Shown here one piece after another: positions 1-35,100 of a DNA stretch of 64,000 nucleotides; the first letter of the stretch is position 1, and each line of letters begins with the position of its first letter. Made by a program: the position numbers and the translations under genes. The notes under the pieces are model-generated. The model was not told the origin of the DNA. It saw only the letters and a list, made by a program, of their open reading frames with translations, and did not search any database. This stretch comes from Macrostomum lignano (lineage: Eukaryota): NCBI GenBank assembly GCA_002269645.1, contig NIVC01002463.1, forward strand, positions 1 through 64,000, in the 5' to 3' direction.

Positions 1-859
1 AATCCAGATATGTTTTGCTTCCAAGAAGAATCGCAGTCCATGCGCGCGTGCAAGACCGGGCCAAAGGAAACGCCTCAGAGATCTTTGGTGCGGGCAACAT
101 CTGCCGCTAGCCTAGCTGACGCGCTTGCACCGCGGGTGCTGCTGTGTGGCCCAAGGCTTGAAGCGATTGAACTGGCAAGGGGGGGGGGGGTCCGGCGCCG
201 CCTCTCGCCTTCTGCATGACTATTAAATTCAAGTCAGGCGGGCCCTGCATGTCTTTTTTTAGCCATGGGGGGTGGGGGCGCACGGGATTAAGGATAAGCG
301 GGCCGAGTTGGGGGGCTAAGCTGGGGAGGGGGGGGGCAGGGAAAGGCAGAGGCTACACGGCCGCATGCTTGCTGTTATACTGGCAGTTCTGGCTCGATGC
401 CAATGGGAAATATGAGGATCTGAAGATTAGAGCTAGAGAAGGTCAGTCCCGATTATTATTGAGCTCGATTATTAATATTATTAATTATTAAGAGCTGATT
501 GCAAGCTGTCCGATTGTGTGCGGATCGTGCAAACTCAAGGCTGCCTATGCAAGCAATGAACTCTGCATCAGTAGGTAGGCTGACCTCGCAAAGGATTACC
601 GGGAGTTTACCTTTTGTCAAGAGTTCCTAGCATTTCTCGTAATTCATTATTGAGTCCAGCTGCAAGGTGGAGACTATGGAGAAGAGAGAGCTACATGTAT
701 ATGGCGAACACCGAAAAAACAACCTGAACCGGAGGGGCAATGTATTTTCCTTTGGATATTTGTACTTTAGAACCAGTATCAGAAGATACGTGTTGATGTC
801 AAATAGACTCGTAGAAATGACACGAAGATTCAATTCTCGACCCACTCGAAACAATTTGC

Positions 860-1036
860 GTCCTTGAGCAAGGCACTTTACATTGCTTCAGTTCACGCAG
901 TAAAATGAGTGCCAAAATAAATGACCGCCCAGTCCTTGGACTGAACAGCCGTACGCAGCCTTCAGATGCGCCGCGTAATAGCTGCGGCTGAGCTGTCGGT
1001 TGCACATCTGTCCATTAGGGCAGGTGTAATAAAAAA
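860..1036 (+). mobile_element. 5'-truncated copy of the tRNA-derived CORE-like SINE
   Basis: gtccttgagcaaggcact...cagtccttggactgaacagccgtacgcagccttcagatgcgccgc...gcacatctg matches the body and 3' part of the copies at 15558-15846 and 44603-44890; ends in an A-rich tail. Confidence 0.85.
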
Positions 1037-1044
1037 GTAATCTC

Positions 1045-4093: not shown

Positions 4094-4622
4094 CTGACTA
4101 TTGGGGTGTCTCGGGACTGACAATTGGGGTGTCTCGGGGCTGACAATTCCAGTGTCTCGGGACTGACAATTGGGGTGTCTCGGGACTGACAATTGGGGTG
4201 TCTCGGGGCTGACAATTGGGGTGTCTCGGGACTGACAATTGGGGTGTCTTGGGGCTGACAATTGGGGTGTCTCGGGACTGACAATTGGGGTGTCTCGGGG
4301 CTGACAATTGGGGTGTCTCGGGACTGACAATTCCAGTGTCTGGGGGCTGACAATTCCAGTGTCTGGGGGCTGACAATTCTAGTGTCTGGGGGCTGACAAC
4401 TCCAGTGTCTCGGGGCTGAGAATTCCAGTGTCTGGGGGCTGACAACTCCAGTGTCTGGGGGCTGACAACTCCAGTGTCTCGGGGCTGACAATTCCAGTGT
4501 CTGGGGGCTGACAACTCCAGTGTCTGGGGGCTGACAACTCCAGTGTCTGGGGGCTGACAACTCTAGTGTCTGGGGGCTGACAACTCCAATGTCTGGGGCT
4601 GAAAATTTCAGTGTCTGGGGCA
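4094..4622. repeat. 23-bp minisatellite, about 23 copies
   Basis: Unit CTGACAATTGGGGTGTCTCGGG(A/G) changing to CTGACAA(C/T)TCCAGTGTCTGGGGG; explains the SPETPQL/PRHPNCQ pseudo-ORFs. Confidence 0.95.
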
Positions 4623-7265: not shown

Positions 7266-8314
7266 TCAATCGCCGCTCCTGCCAGATGCGTCAGCCTCGC
7301 CGGCAGCGGTTGTCGTCGTCTCCGCTGTTGCCGCTTCACCCGGGCTGTTCAACTCGCTGGGATAGTCCAGCCACCTGTAGGCCCTGGAGATGAGCAGCAG
7401 GGACACCACCATGAGCTCCATCATGATGAGGAACACCAGCCAGGCCAGCCGCTGCAGGGTGCCGCCGATCAGGAGGCCCACCAGGATGGCCAGAGCGGAC
7501 ACGGACCTGAAGATGCCCTGCGCAATGTCCATCTCGCCAAGCGGCAGGCCTTTGCTGTACATGCTGTCGGGCAGGGCGATGGCGAACGGGATGCCGATCA
7601 CGTGACCAACGATTCCGGTCAGCAGCAGGCCGATGTACAGCGACTTCTGGTGGTTGTTGATGAAGATCAGCGTGACGAAGCTCCAGAAGTACACCGCGAT
7701 GAGGAAGGCGACGCCGAGAATCAACAGCAGCCGGTCGGGGAACTTCGAGGACAGGTAGCGGACCAGGAGGTACACGAAGATGACTAGGATGCCTGCGCCC
7801 AGGTACACCAGGCTGGTGTTCTGCTCGTCCCAGTCAAAGTAGCGCTGAGCCACCGGCAACAGGACGGACTCGAGCGCCATCAGGCTAAAGTAGCTGGAGA
7901 AGGTGACGAACAGCATTGCGAAGGTGTCCGGCTTGAAGAACATGCGCACCTTGGCGGAGTTAAGCTGTCGAGTCAGCCGGTCGCACAGCCGGCGACAGCG
8001 GCCTCCCTCGCTGGCCTCCGTCGGCGGCAGCGACAGCGGCGGGTCGGCGGCGGCGGCATCGGCGGCGCTGAGATTCTCGTTGGAGGCGGCGCGCGACGAC
8101 TTGGCGCTGACGGTGGTCGGCTCGGCTGATTCGGCTGCCGCCTGGCCGTCCGGCTGCATGCGGTCGTGGCTGATGTAGGGGTACACCACGATGACGGCCA
8201 CCGTGTGCACAGCCCACAGAAAGGCCATGAGCAGCCCGGGCGTGTTGTACACGTTGATGACAAAGTTCTGCACCCGGTAGCGCACCGGATGAATTATCAG
8301 TGTCAGGGCCGGGC
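7266..8314 (-). CDS. MFSD8: MFSD8/CLN7-like major facilitator transporter, exon 3 (terminal)
   Basis: Acceptor accag at 8315-8319, phase 1. Reads (G)PALTLIIHPVRYRVQNFVINVYNTPGLLMAFLW...ESVLLPVAQRYFDW...; multiple TM helices; TGA at 7266-7268. Confidence 0.85.
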
Positions 8315-8496: not shown

Positions 8497-9799
8497 GGAC
8501 AAATTACTTCGCTATGGACTCCCAAACCGCTCAACCAAATTACACCAAACTTTACACCCACCCTAAACTTACTACGGAGAATGTCTTAGGCTACCTTTAA
8601 ATTTCCTAAATTTGAGTCTTCCTACCTAGAAGTACAAAAAAGTGCTCAAAATGCGCGATATTTTCACTAAATCCTCAATAGCGCCGCTCCAATTTTACCG
8701 ATTCTCTTCAAATTTGACACAGACAATCTTCAACTATTTTGGCACAACCATGTAAAATTTCGAGTCTTAAAGTTAATCCTGAGCGGTGCTGTGTACTTTT
8801 AAAATTAGGCTGTTTTTTGCAGCGTAGCAACCACCCCAACCTCCGCCCGCCTGCCTCTCTTTCCCGATCTGGGCCCAGATGTGTAAAAGGGTTTCAAAAT
8901 TGACTAACTTTCAGCTGCCATAAGTTTGCTCCACGTAAAGCGATTGACTTCAAACTTGACACAATTCTTCATTGACTCATTCTCTATCTAAATGTAAAGT
9001 TTCAACTCTGTATCTCAATCAGGACGGAAACTGTAAGCATGTGAAGTTTGTCTGCTTTTTCTGTTGTTTGTGCCACTCACTCACTCATTGCCCCAGCCCA
9101 GACGAAGGGTCAGGCGATAGGGCTGAATGTACATGGCAACGTACAGTGTTTTGGAATAACTTTTAATAGCCTTCTCTGCACCCCGCGAGTGGAGAGGCGT
9201 GGAGAGGAGAGACAGTTTCAGCGAGAGATTCAATCCACTGTCCTCTGTATAGACAAGTCTGCAGCAGTTTAACAGTGGATGGCAAACAGGCAAATCAAGG
9301 CGATGCGGGATGGTTTGTAAAAATAGCGAAAAATTAATGAATAACTTATTACAATGCAAACCTACTAAATTAGTTACACCATGAAGCTTTTAACATAAAG
9401 TTTCGCATAGTGTAACTTTAAAATTTAAATGACTCCTAAGAAATGCGCATTTCCTTGGTTGTTAGACTGCTGCAGAGTGCAGACTGTGGTGGTGGAGCTG
9501 GAGATACACAAATTCCTCTCAGGGCTGCTAATTGGCCAGAAAGGTGACGTGATTAAAGCATGAGAAATGATAACCATGATAGTACTACATCCCACAAACT
9601 GGCTTTCGAAGCAGGGATCGGTAGATTTTTAACTCAAAGGCCAGATAAAGAATCCAGCTCATGGAGTCATGGGCACATGGCTGCGGGCCAGATGAGAGTG
9701 AAAAAGAAAAGGAATAGACTATTAGAAAGAGAGGAAGGGCGAGAGGGGGGTAAGAGAAAAGATATAAGATAACAGGAGAGAGGAGATAAGAGATGAGAA

Positions 9800-9875
<76 letters not shown>

Positions 9876-11487
9876 AAGAAAGAAGAGAGGAGAAAGGAGA
9901 GATGATAAAGTAAAGGGAAGAAGAGGAGAGAGGAAAGAGATGAGATTGTGGAGATGAGAGATGAAGGAAGAGAGGGCAGAGTGCAAAGAGACAAGAGAAG
10001 AGAATAGAGGGGAGAGAGTATAGAAGAGGGAAGAGAAGAGGAGTAAGAAGAGAGGATTCAGTAGAGGGGAAAGAGAAGAGTACACAGGAGAGTGGAGAGT
10101 AAAGATGACAGAAGAGAGTGGGGGTAGAGAGCAAAGATGAGAGTGAACGCGATATATGAGAGGAGAGAGGAGAGTGAAGAGAGAAAAGAGAAGACAAGAG
10201 AGGGAGAGAATAGAAGAGGGAAGAGAAGAGAAGGGAAAAAGGAGAAAGGAAAGAGAGGAGTCAAAAGAGGGGAAAGATCGAAGAGTACAGATGAGAGAGG
10301 TGAGAGAACATACGAGTATAAGAGAGTAAAGATGGCAGATGAGAGAGGGGAGATGAGAGACCAGAGACGAGAGTGAACAGATAAGAGATGGGAGAGTGGA
10401 GAGAAAAAAGGATAGAAATAAGAGATGAGAGGTGAGACAAAGGGAGAGAGAAGTGAGTGAGGAGAGAGGAGGGGAGGGGAGAGAACTGAGAGGACAGGGG
10501 AAAGAGGAGAAAGGACGAGAGAGTAGAGAGAATCTGAGTGAGGAGAGAGGATGGGAGGGGAGAGAATCTGAGTGAGGAGAGAGGATGGGAGGGGAGAGAA
10601 TCTGAGTGAGGAGAGAGGATGGGAGGGGAGAGAATCGAGAGGCCAGGGGAAATTGGTGTAAAGGAGAAGATAGGAGAGGAAAGAGGGGAGAGATTAGAGA
10701 GAAGAGAGATGAGAGGAGAGAGAGAAAGGGGGAGAGGAGAGAGAGCAGATAGAAATGAGAAAAGAGAAGACAGAGAAAATAAAAGAAGAGAAATGAGAGA
10801 TAAGAGAGGAAAGAAGAGAAAACTGAGAGGTGAGGGAAGAGACGATAGAAGAGATGAGAGGAGAGAGTGGACAGAGGAGAGGAGAGAGTTGAAAGAAGAG
10901 AGGAAAAAGGAGAGAGGAGATATGAGGGAAGTGTTGAGAGAGAGTACAGTAAAGAGTGAGAAGAGGGGAGAGGGAACAGAGAGTAGAGAGCAGAGAGAAG
11001 AGAGAGCAGAGAAGAGAGAGTAGAGAGCAGAAAGAAATGAGAAGAGATAAAAGAGGAGAAAGGAGATTTTTGAGATCAAAGACCAGAAAGAAGAGAGGAG
11101 GAGAGAGAAAGGAATAGAGGGGAGAGGGAAGAGACGAGAGAAGAGGGGAGAGAGGAGAGAGGAGAGGTGAGAGACGAGAGAGAAGATAGGAAACAGAAGA
11201 GAAGATAGAAGTTTCAAAGGATACAAGGGACATGGGGAGAAGCAGAGGTAAAGGCCAGGCCAGAGTTTGCCTGACATTCTGGGCAGCACCCCAGCTAATA
11301 ATTTCAATATTTGCCACAAATCCTAATTTTACATGAATGTACTCTATTTTATTTTTAGCTCTATCCTAAATTACTAACTATTAATAAGTTTTTGTTTAAG
11401 TATGACTTCCGATTGTAGAATACACGCAAAAATAGTTCCGGGGATTGGAGTTCCACGGGTTTAAAATCCGCGGGTTTCAACAGCTTG
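8441..11487 (+). mobile_element. Non-autonomous Helitron-like element, copy 1 (about 3.05 kb)
   Basis: Preceded by A. Starts TCTCTACCTATAAAAA followed by a short (TCTG)n; ends with a GC hairpin/palindrome (ccgcgg) and CTTG (CTRR-like). Carries a long GA-rich tract and no Rep/helicase ORF. Confidence 0.75.
9690..11260. repeat. Purine-rich (GA) low-complexity tract inside Helitron-like copy 1
   Basis: Almost only G/A on the + strand; includes (GA)n and a triplicated 33-mer near 10527-10630. Confidence 0.9.
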
Positions 11488-14400
11488 TCTCTACCTATAA
11501 AAACCAAAACTCTGTCTGTCTGTCTGTGGACAAATTACTTCGCTATGGACTCCCAAACCGCTCAACCAAATTACACCAAACTTTACACCCACCCTAAACT
11601 TACTACGGAGAATGTCTTAGGCTACCTTAAAATTTCCTAGACTCAAGTCTTCCTACCTAAAAGTACAAAAAACTGCTCAAAATGCGCGATTTTTTCACTA
11701 AATCCTCCATAGCGCCACTCCACTTTTACCAATCCTCTTCAAATTTGACACGAACAATGTTAAACTATTTTGACACAATCGTGTAAAATTTCGAGTCCCA
11801 AAGTTAATCCTGAACAGCGCTGTGCACTTTTAAAGTTAGGCTGCTTTTTTTCAGCGAGACAGCCACCCCAACCTCCGCCCGCCTGCCTCTCTTTCCCGAT
11901 CTGGGCCCAGATGTGTAAAAGGGGTTTCAAAATTGACTAACTTTCGGCTGCCATAAGTTTGCTCCACGTAAAGCGATTGACTTCAAATTTAACACAATTC
12001 TTCTTTGACTCATTCTCTGACTAAATGTAAAGTCTCAACTCTGTATCTCAATCAGGACGGAAACTGTAAGCATGTGAAGTTTGTCTGCTTTTTCTGTATT
12101 TTGCGCCGCTAAATCACTCTCACTCTTCCCCACGCCCAGACGAAGGGTCATGCGATAGGGCTCAATGTACATAGCAAATGTACAGTGTTTTGGAATAACT
12201 TTTTAATAGCCTTCTCTGTACCCCCGCGAGTGGAGAGGCGTGGAGAGGAGAGAGTTTAGCCAGAGATTCAAACCAGTCCTCTGTATAGACAAGTCGCAGC
12301 AGTTAACCTTTTAAAGTGTTTAAACCTTAAAAACAAGGATGGCAAATCAAGGCGATGTGGGAAGGTTTGTAAAAATAGCGAAAAATTAATGAATAACTGA
12401 TTACAATGCAATCCTATTATCCTACTAAATTAGTTACACCATGAAAATTTTAACATTAAGATTCGCATAAGGTACTTTAAAATTTAAATGGTCTCCTAAG
12501 AAATGCGTATTTCCTTGGTTGTTAGACTGCTGCAGACTGTGGTGGTGGAGCTGGAGAATGGAGATACAAAAATTCCTCTCAGGGCTGCTAATTGGCCAGA
12601 AAGATGACGTGATTAAAGCATGAGAAATGATAACAACCATGATAGTACTATGTCCCATGATAGTACTTTCGAAGCAGGGATCGGCAGATTTTTATCTCAA
12701 AGGCCAGATAAAGAATCCAGCTCAGGGCTGCGGGCCAGATGAGAGTGAAAAGGAAAAGGAATAGACTATTAGAGAGGAAGGAGGGGCGAGAGGGGGATAA
12801 GAGAAAAGATAGAAGATAATAGGAGAGACGAGGGGGTTGAAGAGAGAGCAGAGAATATGGACGAAGAAGCGAGAGGAGGGGAGAGAGAAGGGAGAGGAAA
12901 TAGTAGAGGTGAGAAGATGGAGAGAGAAGAGGGGAGAGATGAGACAGAGGATCAAACAGAGAGGAGAGTAGAGAAGAGTGAGAAGAGATGAGAGAACAGA
13001 GGTACCTTAAGGTAGATGAGAGAGGATCGAGAGGAGAGATTCGAAAGGATAGAGAAGAGAGGAGATAAGGGGGGAGAGAGGGGAAGAGAGAGGAGTGAGA
13101 AGAGGAGATAAGAGATGAGAGTGAGAGATGAGTGAGAAGATGAGATAAGAGATAAGAGATAAGAGAGAGAGAGTTGAGAAAGAAGAGAGGAGAAAGGAGA
13201 GATGATAGAGTAAAGGGAAGAGGAGGAGAGAGTGGAGATGACAGATGAAGGAAGAGAGGGCAGAGTGCAGAGAGACGAGAGAAGAGAATATAGAGGGGAG
13301 AGAGTATAGAAGAGGGAAGAGAAGAGAGGAGTAAGGAAAGAGATTAGTCAGAAGAGGGGAAAGAGAAGAGTACACAGTAGAGAGGAGAGTAGAGATGACA
13401 GAAGAGAGAGGGGAATGAGAGAGTGAAGATGAGGGTGAACAGACGATATAAGAGAGGAGAGAGGAGAGTGAGAGAGAAGAGAGAAGAAAAGAGAGGGAGA
13501 GAGTATAGAAGAGAGAAGTGAAGAGACGAGAAGAAAGAAGAAAAGATCGAGTCCTCCTGAGTCAAAAAAGGGGAAAGAGAGGAGTAAAAGGTGAGAGAGG
13601 AAAGAGGTGAGAGAACATATGAGAGTAAAGATGAAATATGAGAGAGGGGAGATGAGAGATCAGAAACGAGAGTGAACAGACGAGAGATGGGAGAGTGGAG
13701 AAAAAAGGAGAACTATAAGAAATAAGAGATGAGAGGTAAGTGAGGAGAGAGGAGGGGAAGGGAGAGAATCGGGAGGACATGGGAAATTGGTGAAAAGGAC
13801 GAGAGAGGAGAGGAAAGAGGGGAGAGATTAGAGAGAAGAGAGATAGGACAGGAGAGAGCAGAGAGATAAGAGATGAGAGACAGAGAAGGGAGGGGAGAGA
13901 AAGCAGAGATTTGAGAAAAGATAAGAGAGAGAAGACAAAAGAAGAGAAATAAGAGATAAGAGAGCAAAGACGAGAGAGGAGGTGAGGGAAGAGACGATAG
14001 AAGACATGAGAGGAGAGAGTTGAGAGAAGAGAGGAAAAAGGAGAGAGTAGAGATAAGGAAAGTGTTGAGAGAGGGTAGAGTAAGGAGTGAGAAGAGAGGT
14101 GAGGGAAGAGAGAGTAGAGAGCAGAGGGAAGAGAGAGTAGAGAGCAGAGAGAAATGAGAAGAGATAAAAAAGGAAAAAGGAGATATGAGAGACCAGAGAG
14201 AAGAGAGGAGAGGAGATAGAAAAGAATAGAAGGGAGAGGGAAGAGACGAGAGAGGAGAGAGGACAGAGGAGAGAAGAAAGAAAAGATAACAGGAGACAGA
14301 GAGAGAAGAGACGAGACAGAAGATAGGAAACAGAAAAGAAGATGGAAGTTTCAAAGGATGCAAAGGACATAGGGAGAGGCAGAGGTACAGGCCTGAGTTT

Positions 14401-14610: not shown

Positions 14611-14946
14611 TAGATATATAAAAAAAGCATGAGGCCAGCGAAGCCTCTCTATCCGGCCCTCGGGTCTTTTGAAACTTCAAAATAGCAATCCAGCCCGCTC
14701 AAGGTTTGTGTCTCTTCTCAGCTCTTTTCTCTCCTTTCTCCGGTGAGTCCATAGCCCAGTAATGAAAACTAAGACCTGATGAAGAAGAGTCAGAACCCAG
14801 AGAGATGTCAGTCAGTTAGTTTGCAGTGAAGTCAGACTTGACAAAGTAGAAAAACTTAGAGAATGGTCCTGGTACTTTGTTAAAACCTTTTATATCGTAT
14901 CAGCTACCAGTTTTGCTCTCCTATCCTCTGCGGACTATGCTCTCAC

Positions 14947-15376
14947 CCGCGATGAGTCCGAACTGTCGCACCAGCAGCAGGTACACAATAACGGAGGTGC
15001 GCTCTCTCTTGGTGGTCACTCGGACCACGTCGGCGTACAGCGGCGGCTCCGCTCCAGCTCCAGCGCCGGCCACGAATCGGCCCAGCAGGATGAGCCAGGG
15101 CTGGGAGGCGGCGAAGTAGATCAGGTTGCCGGCGATCTCCAGCTGATTGGCGATGATGATGAGCAGCTTCACCCGGAGCAGATTCCTGCGCGACAGCCAG
15201 CCGAACAGCGGGGTGCAGAACAGGGCGGACACGTTGAAGGCGGCCAGGGTGGCGCCGTAGAACTGCACGCTGGTCTTCAGGTCGAAGCGGGTGTACAGGT
15301 ACAGCCAGAGCGTCGGCAGGATGATGGACCGCTCGACTCCGGTGAGCAGGCCCCAGAAGCCGCCGATGACGGTGAC
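14947..15376 (-). CDS. MFSD8: MFSD8/CLN7-like transporter, exon 2
   Basis: Acceptor ttacag, phase 0. Reads VTVIGGFWGLLTGVERSIILPTLWLYL...LFGWLSRR...LLGRFVAGAGAG...GLIA(G), with MFS motif A-like and GRF motifs. Donor gtgaga, phase 1, matching exon 3. Confidence 0.88.
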
Positions 15377-15557
15377 CTGTAAGGTGAATTGATTTGATTT
15401 CCAGTGACCAGGTGAGATTCCGCAAAGGTGTTTCAAGCAATATTGATCAACACGTTTAAGACCGTTGAGACTTCTTCGTATACTTGATATGCCAACGACT
15501 AAAAACTCTTAAACCGGTGCTGGTGCCTTATGACTACGCTTATTATTACGAGCTATC

Positions 15558-15846
15558 ATTATTTATTCACCTGCCCTAACAGGCAGATGTGCAACCGACA
15601 GCTCAGCCGCAGCTATTGCGCGGCGCATCTGAAGGCTGCGTACGGCTGTTCAGTCCAAGGACTGGGGGGTCGCCACACACACCCTCAATTACCCCAGCTG
15701 GCACCCATTTTACAGCTGGGTGAACTGAAGCAATGCAGAGTTAAGTGTCTTGCTCAAGGACACATTATTCCGACTGGGATCGGGAATCGAACCCCTGACC
15801 TTCAAGTCGTGAGTCCGACGCTCTAACCATTAGGCTACAACCCCTT
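15558..15846 (-). mobile_element. Full-length tRNA-derived SINE with MIR/CORE-like central domain
   Basis: Minus strand: GGGGTTGTAGCCTAATGGTTAGAGCG (A box)...GGTTCGATTCCC (B box), then TGTGTCCTTGAGCAAGACACTTAACTCTGCATTGCTTCAGTTCACCCAGCTGTAAAATGGGT (CORE-like), then an AT-rich tail. Confidence 0.9.
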
Positions 15847-18800
15847 GGCTACAGCCCCTTGGCTACAACCCCTTGGCTACAACCCCTTAGCTACAGCCCT
15901 CTTGGCTACAGCCCCCTTGGCTACAACCCCTTAGCTACAGCCCTCTTGGCTATAACCCCTTGGCTACAGCCCCCTTGGCTACAACCCCTTGGCTACAGCC
16001 CTCTTGGCTACAACCCCTTGGCTACAACCCCTTGGCTACAGCCCCCTTGGCTACAACCCCTTGGCTACAGCCCCCTTGGCTACAGCCCCCTTGGCTACAG
16101 CCCCCTTGGCTACAACCCCTTGTCTACAGCCCTATTGGCTACAGCCCCCTTGGCTACAGCCCCCTTGGCTACAGCCCCCTTGGCTACAACCCCTTGGCTA
16201 CAACCCCTTGGCTACAGCCCCCTTGGCTACAACCCCTTGGCTACAGCCCCCTTGGCTACAGCCCCCTTGGCTACAACCCCTTAGCTACAGCCCCCTTGGC
16301 TACAGCCCCCTTGGCTACAGCATCCTTGGCTACAGCCCCCTTGGCTACAGCCCCCTTGGCTACAGCCCCTTGGCTACAACCCCTTAGCTACAGCCCCCTT
16401 GGCTACAGCCCCCTTGGCTACAACCCCTTAGCTACAGCCCCCTTGGCTACAGCCCCCTTGGCTACAACCCCTTAGCTACAGCCCTCTTGGCTACAACCCC
16501 TTGGCTACAACCCCTTGGCTACAGCCCCCTTGGCTACAACCCCTTAGCTACAGCCCTCTTGGCTACAACCCCTTAGCTACAACCCCTTGGCTACAGCCCC
16601 CTTGGCTACAACCCCTTGGCTACAGCCCCCTTGGCTACAGCCCCCTTGGCTACAGCCCCCTTGGCTACAACCCCTTAGCTACAGCCCTCTTGGCTATAAC
16701 CCCTTGGCTACAGCCCCCTTGGCTACAACCCCTTGGCTACAGCCCTCTTGGCTACAACCCCTTGGCTACAACCCCTTGGCTACAGCCCCCTTGGCTACAA
16801 CCCCTTGGCTACAGCCCTCTTGGCTACAACCCCTTGGCTACAACCCCTTGGCTACAGCCCCCTTGGCTACAACCCCTTGGCTACAGCCCCCTTGGCTACA
16901 GCCCCCTTGGCTACAGCCCCCTTGACTACAACCCCTTGTCTACAGCCCCCTTGGCTACAGCCCCCTTGGCTACAGCCCCCTTGGCTACAGCCCCCTTGGC
17001 TACAACCCCTTGGCTACAACCCCTTGGCTACAGCCCCCTTGGCTACAACCCCTTGGCTACAGCCCCCTTGGCTACAACCCCTTAGCTACAGCCCCCTTGG
17101 CTACAGCCCCCTTGGCTACAACCCCTTAGCTACAGCCCCCTTGGCTACAGCCCCCTTGGCTACAGCATCCTTGGCTACAGCCCCCTTGGCTACAGCCCCC
17201 TTGGCTACAGCCCCTTGGCTACAACCCCTTGGCTACAGCCCCCTTGGCTACAACCCCTTGGCTACAACCCCTTAGCTACAGCCCTCTTGGCTATAACCCC
17301 TTAGCTACAGCCCCCTTGGCTACAGCCCCCTTGGCTACAACCCCTTAGCTACGGCCCTCTTGGCTATAACCCCTTGGCTACAGCCCCCTTGGCTACAACC
17401 CCTTGGCTACAGCCCTCTTGGCTACAACCCCTTGGCTACAGCCCCCTTGGCTTCAACCCCTTGGCTACAGCCCTCTTGGCTACAACCCCTTGGCTACAAC
17501 CTCTTGGCTACAGCCCCCTTGGCTACAACCCCTTGGCTACAGCCCCCTTGGCTACAGCCCCCTTGGCTACAGCCCCCTTGGCTACAACCCCTTGGCTACA
17601 GCCCCCTTGGCTACAGCCCCCTTGGCTACAGCCCCCTTGGCTACAACCCCTTGGCTACAACCCCTTGGCTACAGCCCCCTTGGCTACAGCCCCCTTGGCT
17701 ACAGCCCCCTTGGCTACAACCCCTTGGCTACAGCCCCCTTGGCTACAACCCCTTAGCTACAGCCCCCTTGGCTACAGCCCCCTTGGCTACAACCCCTTAG
17801 CTACAGCCCCCTTGGCTACAGCCCCCTTGGCTACAGCATCCTTGGCTACAGCCCCCTTGGCTACAACCCCTTAGCTACAGCCCCCTTGGCTACAACCCCT
17901 TGGCTACAGCCCCCTTGGCTACAGCCCCCTTGGCTACAACCCCTTAGCTACAGCCCCCTTGGCTACAACCCCTTCGCTACAGCCCCCTTGGCTACAGCCC
18001 CCTTGGCTACAGCCCCCTTGGCTACAGCCCCCTTGGCTACAGCCCCCTTGGCTACAACCCCTTGGCTACAACCCCTTGGCTACAGCCCCCTTGGCTACAA
18101 CCCCTTGGCTACAGCCCCCTTGGCTACAACCCCTTGGCTACAGCCCCCTTGGCTACAGCCCCCTTGGCTACAACCCCTTGGCTACATCCCCCTTGGCTAC
18201 AGCCCCCTTGGCTACAGCCCCCTTGGCTACAGCCCCCTTGGCTACAACCCCTTGGCTACAGCCCCCTTTGCTACAGCCCCCTTGGCTACAGCCCCCTTGG
18301 CTACAGCCCCCTTGGCTACAACCCCTTGGCTACAACCCCTTGGCTACAACCCCTTGGCTACAGCCCCCTTGGCTACAGCCCCCTTGGCTACAACCCCTTA
18401 GCTACAGCCCCTTGGCTACAACCCCTTGGCTACAGCCCCCTTGGCTACAGCCCCTTGGCTACAGCCCCCTTGGCTACAACCCCTTGTCTACAGCCCTCTT
18501 GGCTACAACCCCTTGGCTACAGCCCCCTTGGCTACAGCCCCCTTGGCTACAACCCCTTAGCTACAGCCCCCTTGGCTACAACCCCTTAGCTACAGCCCTC
18601 TTGGCTACAACCCCTTGGCTACAACCCCTTGGCTACAGCCCCCTTGGCTACAACCCCTTAGCTACAGCCCTCTTGGCTACAACCCCTTAGCTACAACCCC
18701 TTGGCTACAGCCCCCTTGGCTACAACCCCTTGGCTACAGCCCCCTTGGCTACAGCCCCCTTGGCTACAGCCCCCTTGGCTACAACCCCTTAGCTACAGCC

Positions 18801-21800
18801 CCCTTGGCTACAACCCCTTAGCTACAGCCCCCTTGGCTACAACCCCTTGGCTACAGCCCCCTTGGCTACAGCCCCCTTGGCTACAGCCCCCTTGGCTACA
18901 ACCCCTTGTCTACAGCCCTCTTGGCTACAACCCCTTGGCTACAGCCCCCTTGGCTACAGCCCCCTTGGCTACAACCCCTTAGCTACAGACCCTTGGCTAC
19001 AACCCCTTAGCTACAGCCCTCTTGGCTACAACCCCTTGGCTACAACCCCTTGGCTACAGCCCCCTTGGCTACAACCCCTTAGCTACAGCCCTCTTGGCTA
19101 CAACCCCTTAGCTACAACCCCTTGGCTACAGCCCCCTTGGCTACAGCCCCCTTGGCTACAGCCCCCTTGGCTACAACCCCTTAGCTACAGCCCTCTTGGC
19201 TATAACCCCTTGGCTACAGCCCCCTTGGCTACAACCCCTTGGCTACAGCCCTCTTGGCTACAACCCCTTGGCTACAACCCCTTGGCTACAGCCCCCTTGG
19301 CTACAACCCCTTGGCTACAGCCCTCTTGGCTACAACCCCTTGGCTACAACCCCTTGGCTACAGCCCCCTTGGCTACAACCCCTTGGCTACAGCCCCCTTG
19401 GCTACAGCCCCCTTGGCTACAGCCCCCTTGACTACAACCCCTTGTCTACAGCCCCTTGGCTACAGCCCCCTTGGCTACAGCCCCCTTGGCTACAGCCCCC
19501 TTGGCTACAACCCCTTGGCTACAACCCCTTGGCTACAGCCCCCTTGGCTACAACCCCTTGGCTACAGCCCCCTTGGCTACAACCCCTTAGCTACAGCCCC
19601 CTTGGCTACAGCCCCCTTGGCTACAACCCCTTAGCTACAGCCCCCTTGGCTACAACCCCTTGGCTACAGCCCCCTTGGCTACAGCCCCCTTGGCTACAGC
19701 CCCCTTGGCTACAGCCCCCTTGGCTACAACCCCTTGGCTACAACCCCTTAGCTACAGCCCTCTTGGCTATAACCCCTTGGCTACAGCCCCCTTGGCTACA
19801 GCCCCCTTGGCTACAACCCCTTAGCTACAGCCCTCTTGGCTATAACCCCTTGGCTACAGCCCCCTTGGCTACAACCCCTTGGCTACAGCCCTCTTGGCTA
19901 CAACCCCTTGGCTACAGCCCCCTTGGCTACAGCCCCCTTGGCTACAACCCCTTAGCTACAGCCCCCTTGGCTACAGCCCTCTTGGCTACAACCCCTTGGC
20001 TACAACCCCTTGGCTACAGCCCCCTTGGCTACAACCCCTTGGCTACAGCCCTCTTGGCTACAACCCCTTGGCTACAGCCCCCTTGGCTACAACCCCTTGG
20101 CTACAGCCCCCTTGGCTACAGCCCCCTTGGCTACAGCCCCCTTGGCTACAGCCCCCTTGGCTACAACCCCTTGGCTACAGCCCCCTTGGCTACAGCCCCC
20201 TTGGCTACAGCCCCCTTGGCTACAGCCCCCTTTGCTACAACCCCTTGGCTACAACCCCTTGGCTACAACCCCTTGGCTACAACCCCTTGGCTACAGCCCC
20301 CTTGGCTACAGCCCCCTTGGCTACAACCCCTTAGCTACAGCCCCCTTGGCTACAACCCCTTGGCTACAGCCCCCTTGGCTACAGCCCCCTTGGCTACAGC
20401 CCCCTTGGCTACAACCCCTTGTCTACAGCCCTCTTGGCTACAACCCCTTGGCTACAGCCCCCTTGGCTACAGCCCCCTTGGCTACAACCCCTTAGCTACA
20501 GCCCCCTTGGCTACAACCCCTTAGCTACAGCCCTCTTGGCTACAACCCCTTGGCTACAACCCCTTGGCTACAGCCCCCTTGGCTACAACCCCTTAGCTAC
20601 AGCCCTCTTGGCTACAACCCCTTAGCTACAACCCCTTGGCTACAGCCCCCTTGGCTACAACCCCTTGGCTACAGCCCCCTTGGCTACAGCCCCCTTGGCT
20701 ACAGCCCCCTTGGCTACAACCCCTTAGCTACAGCCCTCTTGGCTATAACCCCTTGGCTACAGCCCCCTTGGCTACAACCCCTTGGCTACAGCCCTCTTGG
20801 CTACAACCCCTTGGCTACAACCCCTTGGCTACAGCCCCCTTGGCTACAACCCCTTGGCTACAGCCCTCTTGGCTACAACCCCTTGGCTACAACCCCTTGG
20901 CTACAGCCCCCTTGGCTACAACCCCTTGGCTACAGCCCCCTTGGCTACAGCCCCCTTGGCTACAGCCCCCTTGGCTACAGCCCCCTTGGCTACAACCCCT
21001 TGGCTACAGCCCCCTTGGCTACAACCCCTTGGCTACAGCCCCCTTGGCTACAACCCCTTAGCTACAGCCCCCTTGGCTACAGCCCCCTTGGCTACAACCC
21101 CTTAGCTACAGCCCCCTTGGCTACAACCCCTTGGCTACAGCCCCCTTGGCTACAGCCCCCTTGGCTACAGCCCCCTTGGCTACAGCCCCCTTGGCTACAA
21201 CCCCTTGGCTACAACCCCTTAGCTACAGCCCTCTTGGCTATAACCCCTTGGCTACAGCCCCCTTGGCTACAGCCCCCTTGGCTACAACCCCTTAGCTACA
21301 GCCCTCTTGGCTATAACCCCTTGGCTACAGCCCCTTGGCTACAACCCCTTGGCTACAGCCCTCTTGGCTACAACCCCTTGGCTACAACCCCTTGGCTACA
21401 GCCCCCTTGGCTACAACCCCTTGGCTACAGCCCTCTTGGCTACAACCCCTTGGCTACAACCCCTTGGCTACAGCCCCCTTGGCTACAACCCCTTGGCTAC
21501 AGCCCCCTTGGCTACAACCCCTTGGCTACAGCCCCCTTGGCTACAGCCCCCTTGGCTACAACCCCTTGGCTACAGCCCCCTTGGCTACAGCCCCCTTGGC
21601 TACAGCCCCCTTGGCTACAGCCCCCTTGGCTACAACCCCTTGGCTACAGCCCCCTTGGCTACAGCCCCTTGGCTACAGCCCCCTTGGCTACAGCCCCCTT
21701 GGCTACAACCCCTTGGCTACAGCCCCCTTGGCTACAGCCCCCTTGGCTACAGCCCCCTTGGCTACAGCCCCCTTGGCTACAACCCCTTGGCTACAGCCCC

Positions 21801-22325
21801 CTTGGCTACAGCCCCTTAGCTACAGCCCTCTTGGCTACAACCCCTTGGCTACAACCCCTTGGCTACAGCCCCCTTGGCTACAACCCCTTAGCTACAGCCC
21901 TCTTGGCTACAACCCCTTAGCTACAACCCCTTGGCTACAGCCCCCTTGGCTACAACCCCTTGGCTACAGCCCCCTTGGCTACAGCCCCCTTGGCTACAGC
22001 CCCCTTGGCTACAACCCCTTGACTACAGCCCCCTTGGCTACAGCCCCCTTGGCTACAGCCCCCTTGGCTACAGCCCCCTTGGCTACAGCCCCCTTGGCTA
22101 CAGCCCCCTTGGCTACAATCCCTTAGCTACAGCCCCCTTGGCTACAACCCCTTGGCTACAGCCCCCTTGGCTACAGCCCCCTTGGCTACAACCCCCTTGG
22201 CTACAACCCCCTTGGCTACAACCCCTTGACTACGACCCCCTTGGCTACGACCCCCTTGGCTACAGCATCCTTGGCTACAGCCCCCTTGGCTACAACCCCC
22301 TTAGCTACAGCCCCCCTGACTACAC
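15833..22325. repeat. 6.5-kb satellite of 14/15-nt units GGCTACAACCCCTT / GGCTACAGCCCCCTT
   Basis: Uninterrupted array of several hundred units with recurring variants; lies entirely in MFSD8 intron 1. Confidence 0.98.
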
Positions 22326-22369
22326 CACCTTTGCACAAAACACAGAAAGAAATGGATGTGCTAGCAAAC

Positions 22370-22525
22370 CTTGGCCTTGGCTGACAACGGGAACTGACTG
22401 CGCAGCCACTCGCAGAAGTGCGCCAGCTTTCGCACCGGCCGGTTGCTGGTGAGACCGGTGTTCTCTCCGCTGGGCTGCTGCTGCTGATCATCACTGTTTG
22501 TCTGGCGTTGATACGGATGCGTCAT
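22370..22525 (-). CDS. MFSD8: MFSD8/CLN7-like transporter, exon 1 (predicted)
   Basis: ATG at 22525; MTHPYQRQTNSDDQQQQPSGENTGLTSNRPVRKLAHFCEWLRSQFPLSAKAK, donor gtttgc, phase 0, joining exon 2 in frame. Total CDS 1635 nt, 544 aa. Confidence 0.7.
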
Positions 22526-24787: not shown

Positions 24788-25050
24788 TAGTCAGCATCCA
24801 GCTGCATCAATCAGCATCCATCTTCATCAATCAGCATCCAGCTGCATCAATCAGCATCCAGCTGCATCAATCAGCATCCAGCTGCATCAATCAACATCCA
24901 GTTGCATCAATCAGCATTCAGCTGCATCAATCAGCATCCAGCTGCATCAATCAACATCCAGCTGCATCAATCAGCATCCAGCTGCATCAATCAGCATCCA
25001 GCTGCATCAATCAGCATCCAGCTGCATCAATTAGCATCCAGCTGCATCAG
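24788..25050. repeat. 20-bp minisatellite CAGCATCCAGCTGCATCAAT, about 13 copies, just downstream of the LHFPL-like gene stop
   Basis: Direct reading. Confidence 0.93.
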
Positions 25051-25729: not shown

Positions 25730-25767
25730 CTGCGGAGGGGAGTGCAGGCGGCTTGATTTTGGTGTTT

Positions 25768-25950
25768 AATAATAATAGAATAGTAATTACCCCAGCTAAT
25801 GCTGGCACTCATTTTACAGCTGGGTGAACTGAAGCAATGCTGAGTTAAATGTCTTGCTCAAGGACACAAATTGTTCCTAGTAGGTCTAGAATCGAACCCC
25901 CGACCTTTCAGTCGTGATTCCGACGCTCTGACCACTGGGCTACACTCCCC
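25768..25950 (-). mobile_element. tRNA-derived CORE-like SINE copy (3' part missing)
   Basis: Minus strand gggagtgtagcccagtggtcagagcgtcgg...ggttcgattc...gtgtccttgagcaagacatttaactcagcattgcttcagttcacccagctgtaaaatgag. Confidence 0.85.
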
Positions 25951-27280: not shown

Positions 27281-27734
27281 AGATGCATGGGGGAAACACG
27301 AGTGAAGAAGATGTTCAGCTGTGCATGTGCGCCAGCCTGCAGTGCAGGTCCTGCATGCCATGCAACTGGGGGAGGGACAAGTTTTCCGGAATCCAACGCA
27401 TCACAGGCGGCACGCAACGCGTCCCTCTGCCTCTCCCCATCTCTCGCATGTGCCGATATCTTTCACCAGCCCCATCCTGCAGAGCGTGTTCGCGGAAAAA
27501 GTTTTACACAGCAGAAAGCGGAGAGCTTCGGTGCAAGGAAATTCCTCCTTCATAGTCCAGTCATCATGACTTCTCTGCAGCTTGCAGGCACGAAGGCATG
27601 CCATGAGCGGCAGAAGGCACGCACACACAGACACACAGAGACGCACAGAGACGGACACAGACAGACACAAAAGCAGACACAGTGATACACTGAGACAGAG
27701 ACAAGACAGCGGGCAGACACGGAGACAGTCACAG

Positions 27735-28510
27735 AGACAAATAGAGACAGTCACGGAGACAGGCACAGAAGCAAACAGAGACGGTCACGGAGACAGGCAC
27801 AGAAGCAAACAGAGACGGTCACGGAGACAGGCACAGAAGCAAACAGAGACGGTCACGGAGACAGGCACAGAAGCAAACAGAGACGGTCACGGAGACAGGC
27901 ACAGAAGCAAACAGAGACGGTCACGGAGACAGGCACAGAAGCAAACAGAGACGGTCACGGAGACAGGCACAGAAGCAAACAGAGACGGTCACGGAGACAG
28001 GCACAGAAGCGAATAGAGACGGTCACGGAGACAGGCACAGAAGCAAACAGAGACGGTCACGGAGACAGGCACAGAAGCAAACAGAGACGGTCACGGAGAC
28101 AGGCACAGAAGCAAACAGAGACGGTCACGGAGACAGGCACAGAAGCAAACAGAGACGGTCACGGAGACAGGCACAGAAGCGAATAGAGACGGTCACGGAG
28201 ACAGGCACAGAAGCAAACAGAGACGGTCACGGAGACAGGCACAGAAGCAAACAGAGACGGTCACGGAGACAGGCACAGAGATAAATAGAGACAGTCACGG
28301 AGACAGGCACAGAGACAAATAGAGACAGTCACGGAGACAGGCACAGAGACAAATAGAGACAGTCACGGAGACAGGCACAGAGACAAATAGAGACAGTCAC
28401 GGAGACAGGCACAGAGATAAATAGAGACAGTCACGGAGACAGGCACAGAGACAAATAGAGACAGTCACAGAGACAGGCACAGAGACAAATAGAGACAGTC
28501 ACGGAGACAG
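27735..28510. repeat. 34-bp minisatellite GACAGGCACAGAAGCAAACAGAGACGGTCACGGA, about 22 copies
   Basis: Direct reading; a second variant (gagacaaatagagacagtc) dominates the right end. Confidence 0.95.
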
Positions 28511-28985
28511 TCAGAGACAGACAGACCAAACATTCTCTGCTATCCTCCTTTGCCCGCTATCCCTCCCCCCTCCCGCCCAAGATACGCTGGCATGAAATTT
28601 TCTCCGGATCGCAGCATCTGGTCGAAGCAGTGAGGGGGAACTGGGGCGGAGAGGGAGGGGAGGTAGAGCCCTCGAGAGTTCAAATCTGCAGTTTAATTGA
28701 AGCCAGAAAAACTGGCGGGTCGGTTTGGGGTTGAATGGAAGAATGGGGAAGACCAGCTAAACAGGCATGCAGAGCGGCTCATAGACGCTCTGACTCTGAG
28801 TCAGAATATTGGAGTGGAAATAAACTGCCTAGCAGTTTATTCCGTTCGGAAGGGAATGAAATCGATTGCGTCTGCCAGACTGGCAATCAACAGACAGACT
28901 GACAGGCAGACCCTAAGGCGTTAGGAAACTCAGAAAGTCAGCCAAAAGTAGTATAAAGAGAACAATTACTAGACCACAGGCAGAA

Positions 28986-32153: not shown

Positions 32154-35100
32154 ACTGTCTGTGTGTTTAGCGGGACCTGAGTTATGTTAATGCGTTACGT
32201 GGACCACGCAATTCCGGTTAAAAAATAGAGTCTGTTTTGACAACGCGAAAGGCTAGCTAGGGTTATCTTTTTGTTAACTTGACGGAATAGCCAGTTCGGG
32301 GAAACTGTGGTGGTTCACTAACTACGTTTTGGGGACCGGGTTAGGTGGACCGCAAAAAAACAGTTGGTTTAGTTAGACCTCTTTCGTTGTAGAAAATTTA
32401 TTGATTTAAACTGTTCTTTTGAACTAATTAAAACAGAAATTCTCAAAAAGAACAGATAAAAGGGTTACGACGTCATTTAATGAAAATATCCCAAGTTCAA
32501 ACCAATTTATTTAGCATTACTAATCGGGTTAATCGGTTAAACAAATGTACGATCGCATTAGTTAGTTGCGTCGCGTGAATACAAGAAGGTGAATGAAAAT
32601 AAAGCATTTTGAAAATAAATACAGAATCATATCAAATACTAACTGTAAACTCATTAAAACTAATTTAGGTCAAAATGTATGCTTCAAATACATGTTAACA
32701 AACGTAAGATTCCATTAGTTAAAAAGGTCATCCGAGTACGAGCCTACAAGAAGTTGAAGGGCATTTTTAATAACGACAAAAGTTACTAAAACTGAAATTA
32801 AATTGATTTGACTACATCAGTCCTATTATACTGAATGAGTTTGTGAGCAATCATATGATAAGCCAATCATTTTACCGACTTTCATCTTTTCGTTCACGCA
32901 GATGATGGATTAATCTTCTCGACAGAGAAATCTGTTCGAGTTGTGTCTGTAGGTTAGGTGGACCAGCTACTCCACAGCACTTCTAGGCGATAATCTGAGC
33001 CAGGAGTCTCCGAGAGACTTTCGTTACACATCCAGATGTTCTGCCTTGATGCTGGACTAGCTCACTTTCTAGGAATCTGTTCTGATTGCATTCTAACAAA
33101 CTGAAGCATTTTCTGCACTAAACTTTCTCGGCGGCTCTGAGAGCCAGAGCCTAAACAGACAGAGAAATCTGTTCGAGTTGTGTCTGTAGGTTAGGTGGAC
33201 CAGCTACTCCACAGCACTTCTAGGCGATAATCTGAGCCAGGAGTCTTCGAGAGACTTTCGTTACACATCCAGATGTTCTGCCTTGATGCTGGACTAGCTC
33301 ACTTTCTAGGAATCTGTTCTGATTGCATTCTAACAAACTGAAGCATTCTCGGCACTAAACTTTCTCGGCGGCTCTGAGAGCCAGAGCCTCAAACAGACAG
33401 AGAAATCTGTTCGAGTTGTGTCTGTAGGTTAGGTGGACCAGCTACTGAGAGCCAAAGCCTCAAACAGACTGAGAGAGCTGCTTCAGTTGTGTCTGTAGGT
33501 TATGTGGACCACCTAAGAGCCAGAGCCCTAAACAGACAGAGAAATCTGTTCGAGTTGTGTCTGTAGGTTAGGTGGACCAGCTACTCCACAGCACTTCTAG
33601 GCGATAATCTGAGCCAGGAGTCTTCGAGAGACTTTCGTTACACATCCAGATGTTCTGCCTTGATGCTGGACTAGCTCACTTTCTAGGAATCTGTTCTGAT
33701 TGCATTCTAACAAACTGAAGCATTCTCGGCACTAAACTTTCTCGGCGGCTCTGAGAGCCAGAGCCTCAAACAGACAGAGAAATCTGTTCGAGTTGTGTCT
33801 GTAGGTTAGGTGGACCAGCTACTCCACAGCACTTCTAGGCGATAATCTGAGCCAGGAATCTCCGAGAGCCTCTCGTTACACATCCAGATGTTCTGCCTTG
33901 ATGCTGGACTAGCTCACTTTCTAGGAATCTGTTCTGATTGCATTCTAACAAACTGAAGCATTCTCGGCACTAAACTTTCTCGGCGGCTCTGAGAGCCAGA
34001 GCCTCAAACAGACAGAGAAATCTGTTCGAGTTGTGTCTGTAGGTTAGGTGGACCAGCTATTCTACAGCACTTCTAGGCGATAATCTGAGCCAGGAATCTC
34101 CGAGAGCCTCTCGTTACACATCCAGATGTTCTGCCTTGATGCTGGACTAGCTCACTTTCTAGGAATCTGTTCTGATTGCATTCTAACAAACTGAAGCATT
34201 TTCTGCACTAAACTTTCTCGGCGGCTCTGAGAGCCAGAGCCTAAACAGACAGAGAAATCTGTTCGAGTTGTGTCTGTAGGTTAGGTGGACCACCTTCTGA
34301 GAGCCAAAGCCTCAAACAGACTGAGAGAGCTGCTTCAGTTGTGTCTGTAGGTTATGAGGACCACCTAAGAGCCAGAGCCTCAAACAGACAGAGAAATCTG
34401 TTCGAGTTGTGTCTGTAGGTTAGGTGGACCAGCTACTCCACAGCACTTCTAGGCGATAATCTGAGCCAGGAGTCTCCGAGAGACTTTCGTTACACATCCA
34501 GATGTTCTGCCTTGATGCTGGACTAGCTCACTTTCTAGGAATCTGTTCTGATTGCATTCTAACAAACTGAAGCATTTTCTGCACTAAACTTTCTCGGCGG
34601 CTCTGAGAGCCAGAGCCTAAACAGACAGAGAAATCTGTTCGAGTTGTGTCTGTAGGTTAGGTGGACCAGCTACTCCACAGCACTTCTAGGCGATAATCTG
34701 AGCCAGGAGTCTCCGAGAGACTTTCGTTACACATCCAGATGTTCTGCCTTGATGCTGGACTAGCTCACTTTCTAGGAATCTGTTCTGATTGCATTCTAAC
34801 AAACTGAAGCATTCTCGGCACTAAACTTTCTCGGCGGCTCTGACAGCCAGAGCCTCAAACAGACAGAGAAATCTGTTCGAGTTGTGTCTGTAGGTTAGGT
34901 GGACCAGCTACTGAGAGCCAAAGCCTCAAACAGACTGAGAGAGCTGCTTCAGTTGTGTCTGTAGGTTATGTGGACCACCTAAGAGCCAGAGCCCTAAACA
35001 GACAGAGAAATCTGTTCGAGTTGTGTCTGTAGGTTAGGTGGACCAGCTACTCCACAGCACTTCTAGGCGATAATCTGAGCCAGGAGTCTTCGAGAGACTT

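Follow-up and report, generated by a model that had tools for sequence, protein, structure and literature searches.

A 6.5-kb intronic minisatellite of a flatworm transporter gene, probably seeded at the 5' end of an adjoining SINE

How does an intron come to hold several kilobases of a short tandem repeat whose last unit is also the beginning of a retroposon? The question is raised by a 64,000-nt stretch of flatworm DNA (contig NIVC01002463.1, positions 1 to 64,000; the window), in which the first intron of a major facilitator superfamily (MFS) transporter gene contains a tandem array that adjoins a short interspersed element (SINE) with a tRNA-like head. An earlier interpretation made from the letters only (the sequence-only reading) had proposed that the head seeded the array, either by reiterative template jumping at the end of reverse transcription or by slippage after insertion. 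Our analysis agrees with the seeding by the head and points to what is probably a locus-specific expansion after insertion, in which a 14-nt seed at the SINE junction was multiplied by slippage and unequal exchange. The array and the parts of the adjoining SINE are as follows.

15845 to 22331, minus strand: minisatellite array of ~445 units, AAGGGGTTGTAGCC (14 nt) and AAGGGGGCTGTAGCC (15 nt) as read on the minus strand (Tandem Repeats Finder (TRF), unit census).
15538 to 15844, minus strand: SINE copy A, with tRNA-like head, MIR-like CORE domain, a 3' region common to copies C and D, and an AAT-rich tail (blastn, alignment).
15775 to 15844, minus strand: tRNA-like head of copy A (Rfam RF00005, 34.1 bits at a gathering score of 29, model positions 1-71).
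15837 to 15827, minus strand: box A of the head, TAGCCTAATGG (tRNA-model alignment).
15793 to 15783, minus strand: box B of the head, GGTTCGATTCC (tRNA-model alignment).
15704 to 15764, minus strand: CORE-like central domain TGTGTCCTTGAGCAAGACACTTAACTCTGC...CTGTAAAATGGG, conserved in all four copies (local alignment to the mammalian MIR core).

On the minus strand, the low-coordinate end of the array runs in phase and without any spacer into ...AAGGGGTTGTAGCC/TAATGGTTAGAGCGTCGGACTC... (a slash marks a border here and below). The last array unit makes up the first 12 nt of the head, which begins GGGGTTGTAGCC/TAATGG. Of the 14 bases in the 14-mer unit, 12 are therefore the first 12 nt of the copy A head and the remaining two are AA. 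The sequence-only reading had taken the last unit to be the first 14 nt of the SINE; the spacer-free, in-phase junction stands, but the shared part of the head is 12 nt and the AA is extra. By our own calculation, the chance probability of an in-phase identity of 12 nt is about 4^-12 = 6e-8. The unit is homologous to a part of a SINE in the same genome, as in a SINE-derived satellite, and the element into which the last unit passes in phase is a complete SINE: head, CORE, 3' region and tail are all there. Of box A, the array units include no more than the first 5 nt.

The origin of this unit can be judged from the other members of the SINE family. A blastn search of copy A against the window, together with a four-copy alignment, gave four copies of ~185-310 nt with 87-95% identity, and the features of the family are a tRNA-like head, a central domain, a 3' region and an (AAT)n/(ATT)n tail. 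The three copies other than A are listed here.

25766 to 25950, minus strand: SINE copy B, with head GGGGAGTGTAGCC, internally shortened body and (ATT)n tail; no head-derived array upstream (blastn, alignment).
44603 to 44891, plus strand: SINE copy C, with head GGGGGTTGTAGCTA and (ATT)n tail; inside an unrelated 17-mer minisatellite (TRF, blastn, alignment).
829 to 1040, plus strand: SINE copy D, without recognisable head; its 3' part is 94.6% identical to copy A (blastn, alignment).

The family has the marks of a tRNA-derived SINE, namely a head with RNA polymerase III (Pol III) boxes A and B and short, non-coding, dispersed copies with simple-repeat tails (A, B and C). The triplet at the anticodon position of the copy A head is CAC, and ARAGORN called no tRNA gene on this head, which fits a decayed tRNA-derived sequence. 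The central domain (TGTGTCCTTGAGCAAGACACTTAAC...CTGTAAAATGGG) aligned with an uncurated version of the MIR core over 62 nt at ~80% identity with a score of 55 (shuffles: mean 15.4, max 27), a strong lead by which the element is probably a CORE-SINE. A literature text search with the SINE core sequence returned no matches. The only long interspersed element (LINE) in the window showed no match to the SINE in a blastn comparison for a common 3' region, and the partner LINE may lie outside the window. That LINE is the 3' part of a non-LTR (non-long-terminal-repeat) retrotransposon, a 725-aa open reading frame (ORF) at 61619-63796 (minus strand) with reverse transcriptase and RNase H domains; its closest database relatives have 39-41% identity, and most of them also have an endonuclease domain.

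Copies B and C carry the same head as copy A without a head-derived array, as the sequence-only reading had also noted for the copies at 25950 (minus) and 44603 (plus), though the latter sits in its own unrelated 17-mer minisatellite. One of the three head-bearing copies within the window thus has a head-derived array. Because the same head is found on copies free of the array, the head is ancestral and the array derived, and comparison of the copies supports the direction from head to array. The proposal that the SINE head seeded the array is borne out by the 12-nt in-phase identity, by the same head on the array-free copies B and C, and by the full-length match to the tRNA model. One further argument for it has to be dropped: the TAGCTAC variant of the unit had been equated with the head of the copy at 44603, and this link is a single-base coincidence that carries no weight. 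The AA of the unit is missing before the other two heads, where the sequence reads ...AAAAAT/GGGGAG and ...TAAGA/GGGGGTT. At up to 2 mismatches, the array unit was found nowhere else in the 64 kb except in the head of copy C (2 mismatches).

If the head supplied the seed, the next question is how the seed became 6.5 kb long. TRF described the array (15833-22331) with periods of 15, 29 and 44, ~445 copies, 87-90% matches and a score of 9442. Cutting the array gave 446 units, 253 of them of 15 nt and 189 of 14 nt. In the unit census the commonest plus-strand forms were GGCTACAGCCCCCTT (n=179) and GGCTACAACCCCTT (n=158), and the lesser ones were AGCTAC variants (n=~47) and ...CCCTCTT variants (n=~37). 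Units identical to the head made up 158/446 (35%). The 15-mers accounted for 57% of the units, and the main 15-mer carries GGGGGCTG where the head has GGGGTTG, a difference of two mutational steps, T>C and a 1-nt insertion. Both one-step intermediates were present among the array units, GGGGCTG seven times and GGGGGTTG three times. Because most units differ from the head and the intermediates are still there, amplification must have continued after the mutation.

The arrangement of the units gave further information on growth. Written as a unit-code string, the array shows irregular higher-order patterns (aG, aGG, aGGG) in which the two main units are interleaved, along with long motifs of many units that appear more than once. 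Among the duplicated blocks inside the array are one of 964 bp (lag 1935, 97.2% identity) and one of 714 bp (lag 4049, 97.6% identity); exact repeats measure 479, 353, 351 and 345 bp. Such kb-scale block duplications are the signature of unequal exchange of kb-sized segments. The GC content of the array is 60% and its plus-strand GC skew is -0.45, which means that the G-rich strand is the sense strand of the gene.

These results separate the two mechanisms offered by the sequence-only reading. Growth at the DNA level after insertion is favoured by them, but template jumping as the builder of the array is not, given the 158 head-identical units of 446, the intermediates and the block duplications, and reverse transcription would account for the first few units at most. 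In a reduced form, the seeding could still have taken place in retrotransposition: the LINE reverse transcriptase would add non-templated nucleotides and re-copy the terminal ~12 nt once or more, and the short multimer would expand later as DNA. Template jumps by non-LTR reverse transcriptases leave extra nucleotides, and the AA linker resembles such nucleotides. It also speaks for this possibility that the RNA 5' terminus is exactly where the repeated segment ends, that its units are separated by an AA which is not in the SINE, and that a candidate target-site duplication (TSD), given below, encloses the array. However, copies B and C have no head multimer, 65% of the units are not identical to the head, and the size of the array comes from block duplications. 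By our own reasoning, moreover, a cDNA end with TT that re-annealed on A14-A15 of the head should have left an additional A in the unit (TTAGGCTAC...), and no such unit was observed. We consider seeding during retrotransposition unlikely, though worth keeping in mind. Schemes in which the cDNA end simply re-anneals to the SINE RNA were considered as a separate candidate and rejected, since they predict extra-A or ATTA-insert units and none were observed.

The identity and phase of head and array can be seen directly, as can the variant units, the duplicated blocks, the location in an intron and the richness of the background in repeats. From these we infer in what order the events took place, how the seed formed and by which molecular mechanism it expanded, as follows. 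A tRNA-derived SINE with a MIR-like CORE would have inserted, in gene orientation, into the ~200-nt intron 1 of the MFS transporter gene. A 14-nt segment at the 5' junction of the SINE would then have become tandemly duplicated, and this seed would consist of the first 12 nt of the head (the 5' strand of the acceptor stem and the first box A bases) and of AA, possibly derived from the flank. Amplification of the seed would have taken place in the DNA, in part through replication slippage but mostly through unequal exchange of blocks of several units, and the mutated 15-nt unit would have arisen during growth and been co-amplified with the original one. The outcome would be the present minisatellite of 6.5 kb and ~445 units, in an intron ~35-fold larger than before. 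This locus-specific, post-insertion expansion of a junctional seed is the explanation that we hold to be the probable one.

The outer borders of array and SINE bear on the timing of these events, and three short features were read there.

22317 to 22323, minus strand: candidate 5' TSD GTAGTCA, directly upstream of the first good array unit.
15531 to 15537, minus strand: candidate 3' TSD GTAGTCA, right after the AAT-rich SINE tail (...AATAATAAGC/GTAGTCA/TAAGG); 9/10 positions match if extended to G.GTAGTCA.
22318 to 22331, minus strand: degenerate distal end unit AAGGTGGTGTAGTC, matching the unit consensus at 11/14 positions (direct reading).

The distal border of the array reads ...TGCAAAGGTGGT GTAGTCA GGGGGGCTGTAGCT..., and the sequence after the SINE tail reads ...AATAATAAGC GTAGTCA TAAGGCACC. 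A TSD around array and SINE together had been suggested as a check, and a 7-bp candidate does occur at both outer borders, but the support that it lends is weak. In shuffle tests a 7-nt match was reached in 13% of shuffles with windows of 56 x 71 nt, and in 1.5% with ~25-nt windows beside the two borders; these smaller windows were set one base off and clipped the real match to 6 nt. If the candidate TSD is real, the array would be no older than the insertion. For copies B and C, A/T-rich or tandem-repeat surroundings make the TSDs ambiguous. The most degenerate units of the array are those at its edges, where homogenisation is expected to be weakest. The distal 14 nt AAGGTGGTGTAGTC may be such a decayed edge unit, or may be an original head-like flank that took part in the seeding; as a flank, they may have formed a two-copy seed together with the head and been the source of the AA that the SINE lacks. 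This second possibility fits the short-direct-repeat model cited by Ahmed & Liang (PMC3389668).

The unit-like flanks could also be read in another way, with an array or satellite family (perhaps from another SINE head) already present in the intron and the SINE joined to it by homology-guided 5' attachment or recombination. Unit-like sequence is found both directly after the SINE on its 3' side (GTAGTCATAAGG) and in the distal flank (AAGGTGGTGTAGTC), and copy C shows that the SINE can land inside minisatellites. However, 3' of the SINE there is no array sequence beyond one 7-nt motif, and the absence of the unit from the rest of the 64 kb speaks against a pre-existing family. The exact 12-nt in-phase junction would need the coincidence of ~6e-8 calculated above or an earlier origin from a SINE head, which is the same phenomenon one step back. 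Related arrays were also absent from the public protein and DNA collections scanned, which do not contain the source genome: the 456-aa ORF through the array found two unrelated low-complexity matches among 5.8 billion proteins, and scans of JGI metagenome contigs and GTDB genomes with unit-dimer patterns found 11 loci, all of them unrelated two-unit coding repeats (GYNP/ATAP type) without the TT linker. A pre-existing array is, in our estimate, very improbable.

The expansion that we favour took place inside a conserved gene, whose parts around the array are these.

15377 to 22369, minus strand: intron 1 of the MFS transporter gene, 6,993 nt, with splice sites AAG/GTTTGC and TTACAG/GTCACC read from the sequence.
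22370 to 22525, minus strand: coding sequence of exon 1 of the MFS gene, 52 codons, MTHPYQ...LSAKAK; ENTGLTSNRPVRK and LSAKAK are colinear with ENRGLVSDQPVNR and LTAKLR of the M. lignano protein P0002.
14936 to 15376, minus strand: exon 2 of the MFS gene, VTVIGGFWGLLTGVER..., 78% identical to residues 42-190 of P0002 (tblastn).

The MFS exons were confirmed by tblastn with the Macrostomum lignano protein P0002 and by Pfam MFS_1, and in protein comparisons the flanking exons were most similar to M. lignano MFS transporters, with 55-57% identity overall. Array and SINE are oriented as the gene, and only ~199 nt (38 + 161) of intron 1 lie outside them. An intron of ~200 nt appears to have been enlarged ~35-fold with its reading frame apparently not destroyed. 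Intron 2 of the same gene contains two kb-sized purine-rich low-complexity blocks (GA/AGAGAG type) at 9753-11202 and 13051-14339, and a third purine-rich low-complexity block lies at 56303-56466.

The gene context also bears on the quality of the assembly. The junction could be real and the length and block structure of the array nevertheless be collapsed or inflated from long noisy reads; near-identical kb-scale blocks are of the kind that assemblers duplicate or collapse, and it is the assembly from which the length is known. But the unit variants are rich and non-periodic, with nested duplications and no uniform consensus, the unique flanks are consecutive exons of one conserved gene, and comparable arrays occur across the window as well as in the M. 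lignano locus described next, which was assembled independently. We think it improbable that the length and block structure are an artefact of this kind.

If SINE-head seeding reflects a special pathway or a common one can be asked against the repeat background. Tandem arrays with a period of at least 10 occupy 12.2 kb (19%) of the window, and for the M. lignano genome 15% of simple and tandem repeats has been reported (PMC5730564). The orthologous M. lignano locus (NIVC01000890.1, 32 kb) contains more than 15 minisatellites with periods of 14-48, and in these 32 kb we found no copy of the SINE, no tRNA-like match and no intron at the homologous position. With neither SINE nor homologous intron, this locus allows no empty-site comparison. 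Intron 1 of the window gene has no counterpart in the M. lignano locus at 10001-10579, where residues 1-193 are encoded on one exon, and intron positions differ both ways between the two genes.

One intron of the orthologous MFS gene in the M. lignano locus (20415-21813) consists almost wholly of a 15-mer minisatellite of ~90 units. The first unit of this array (GCAGTGTACCTGGTGCTGG) is a copy of the sequence with which the next exon begins (GCAGGTGTACCTGGGCGCTGG); 0/1000 shuffles reached the score of this alignment. The window exon at ~7800-7840 is uninterrupted where the M. lignano locus has this intron. It is possible that duplication of an exon segment seeded the 15-mer array, which is now spliced out, and this would be a candidate route of intron gain.

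Within the window, two paralogous intron starts (gtaagtcgggtagcctcggcttaaagacgtccaccgatg..., 41350-41700 and 44455-44930) each contain a 17-mer minisatellite, GTTAAGGGACTGCTAGA. The array at 41429-41691 is intact, with 15 units and no SINE, and the second 17-mer array is decayed and interrupted by copy C, which indicates that the local segmental duplication predates the insertion of copy C. The 17-mer array around copy C was also considered as an old head-derived array; this was rejected because the same array is SINE-free in the paralogous intron at 41429-41691. A compound satellite of 3 kb at 32921-35975 has nested periods of 237/238 bp and 68-71 bp with 96-98% identity, and further minisatellites were found at 4106-4621 (period 23), 24791-25049 (period 20), 27718-28517 (period 34) and 52135-52433 (period 55 nt).

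Arrays thus seem to be seeded in these genomes in general from whatever local sequence is at hand, and the SINE head is one such seed. What acted on the head-derived seed would be the general minisatellite-generating activity of the genome and not a SINE-specific pathway. A bolder proposal can be made, in which the 5' terminus of a CORE-type SINE is a recurrent and specific nucleation point for minisatellites in the flatworm lineage, and the reverse transcriptase of the partner LINE makes head multimers with non-templated 2-nt linkers that are expanded later. If true, retrotransposition would feed the unusually large minisatellite load and inflate short introns, but we consider this proposal improbable.

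Several points weigh against a post-insertion expansion from a junctional seed, although we prefer it. It is drawn from a single locus, for which the M. lignano locus offers no empty site. The AA linker is not explained by the SINE sequence, and the very first units may have been made during reverse transcription. The candidate TSD is only 7 nt long and resembles the unit (GTAGTC vs GTAGCC), with a chance probability of 0.015-0.13. Array length and fine structure are those of the assembly alone. The array also folds no better than shuffled sequence: four 147-nt array segments folded as single-stranded DNA gave z values of -0.8 to +1.1 vs shuffles, without special structure or hairpins, and no hairpin-based cause of slippage was found. 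Hairpin-driven slippage was rejected on the basis of these values.

Two other elements of the window were recorded. A 177-aa ORF at 59547-60080 (minus strand) matches the TNP-like RNase H N-terminal domain weakly (PF21787; E=1e-4, 23.0 bits at a cutoff of 24.6) and is possibly a P-element/THAP9-like transposase fragment. An 80-nt segment at 49296-49375 matches a microRNA-precursor model on both strands with 37.6 and 35.9 bits, well under the gathering score of 100. Scoring on both strands points to a near-perfect palindromic hairpin, possibly the end of a miniature inverted-repeat transposable element (MITE) or a foldback.

How does the flatworm array compare with known systems? Tandem arrays at the 5' end of non-LTR retroposons are known from the 5' (CCCTCT)n hexamer arrays of SVA and the 5' monomer arrays of mouse L1, which are transcribed, mobilised with the element and found on many copies. 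The flatworm array, in contrast, is missing from the other copies, and a Pol III type-2 promoter element lies downstream of it.

A closer parallel exists in squamates, where Vassetzky, Kosushkin & Ryskov 2023 (Mob DNA 14:21; PMC10702118) described the SINE-derived satellites sSat1/2/3 in 56 genomes. There, too, the unit is a portion of a tRNA-derived SINE, and one longer end unit continues to the SINE terminus (PMC10702118). A locus has hundreds to ~1000 units, two or three locus-specific subvariants often alternate, and some variants began from the 5'-terminal or tRNA-related parts (PMC10702118). The model given for them, primary duplication followed by amplification and homogenisation, is the same as the route that we propose for the flatworm array (PMC10702118). 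The differences are that the squamate units are 67-215 nt long, simple repeats having been left out by the authors, whereas the flatworm unit of 14/15 nt lies below this range in the minisatellite size class; that the flatworm unit is the extreme 5' 12 nt with 2 non-SINE nt; that the squamate satellites occupy many loci with a subtelomeric tendency, whereas the flatworm array is one locus in 64 kb and intronic in a conserved gene; and that the hosts are vertebrates in one case and a flatworm in the other.

In humans, transposable elements (TEs) account for 23% of mini/satellites (Ahmed & Liang 2012, PMC3389668), and Alu-derived minisatellites were treated by Jurka & Gentles 2006, as cited in PMC3389668. 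As in the flatworm, a SINE fragment becomes a minisatellite at one locus, and its expansion is slow and local (PMC3389668). The initiation has been ascribed to slippage or unequal crossover between direct repeats of 5-10 bp (mostly 7 bp), or to retrotransposition events (PMC3389668). However, the human arrays mostly have 2-3 units, with 17 quoted as large, compared with ~445 in the flatworm, and their units are usually internal TE segments, whereas the flatworm unit comes from the 5' terminus (PMC3389668). The suggestion that the arrangement had not been described is not supported in view of these squamate (PMC10702118) and human (PMC3389668) arrays.

The intronic minisatellites of Macrostomum itself share with the flatworm array their periods (14-48 nt), their lengths of hundreds of bp to kb, their position in introns and a seed taken from local sequence; the array described here differs from them in having a SINE head as its seed and in being the largest of the window. 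Taken by its anatomy, the flatworm array is like the squamate and human cases and most likely arose by the same mechanism. A single locus reveals no new pathway, and it illustrates the very active formation of minisatellites in Macrostomum-type genomes. It offers a well-bounded case of a TE fragment turned into a tandem array, in which the seed can be named to the base, ancestral, derived and intermediate units are all present and growth by block duplication is visible, and the array may be useful as a marker when populations or species are compared. With it, the SINE-derived tandem arrays known from vertebrates are extended to a flatworm and to a 14-nt unit.

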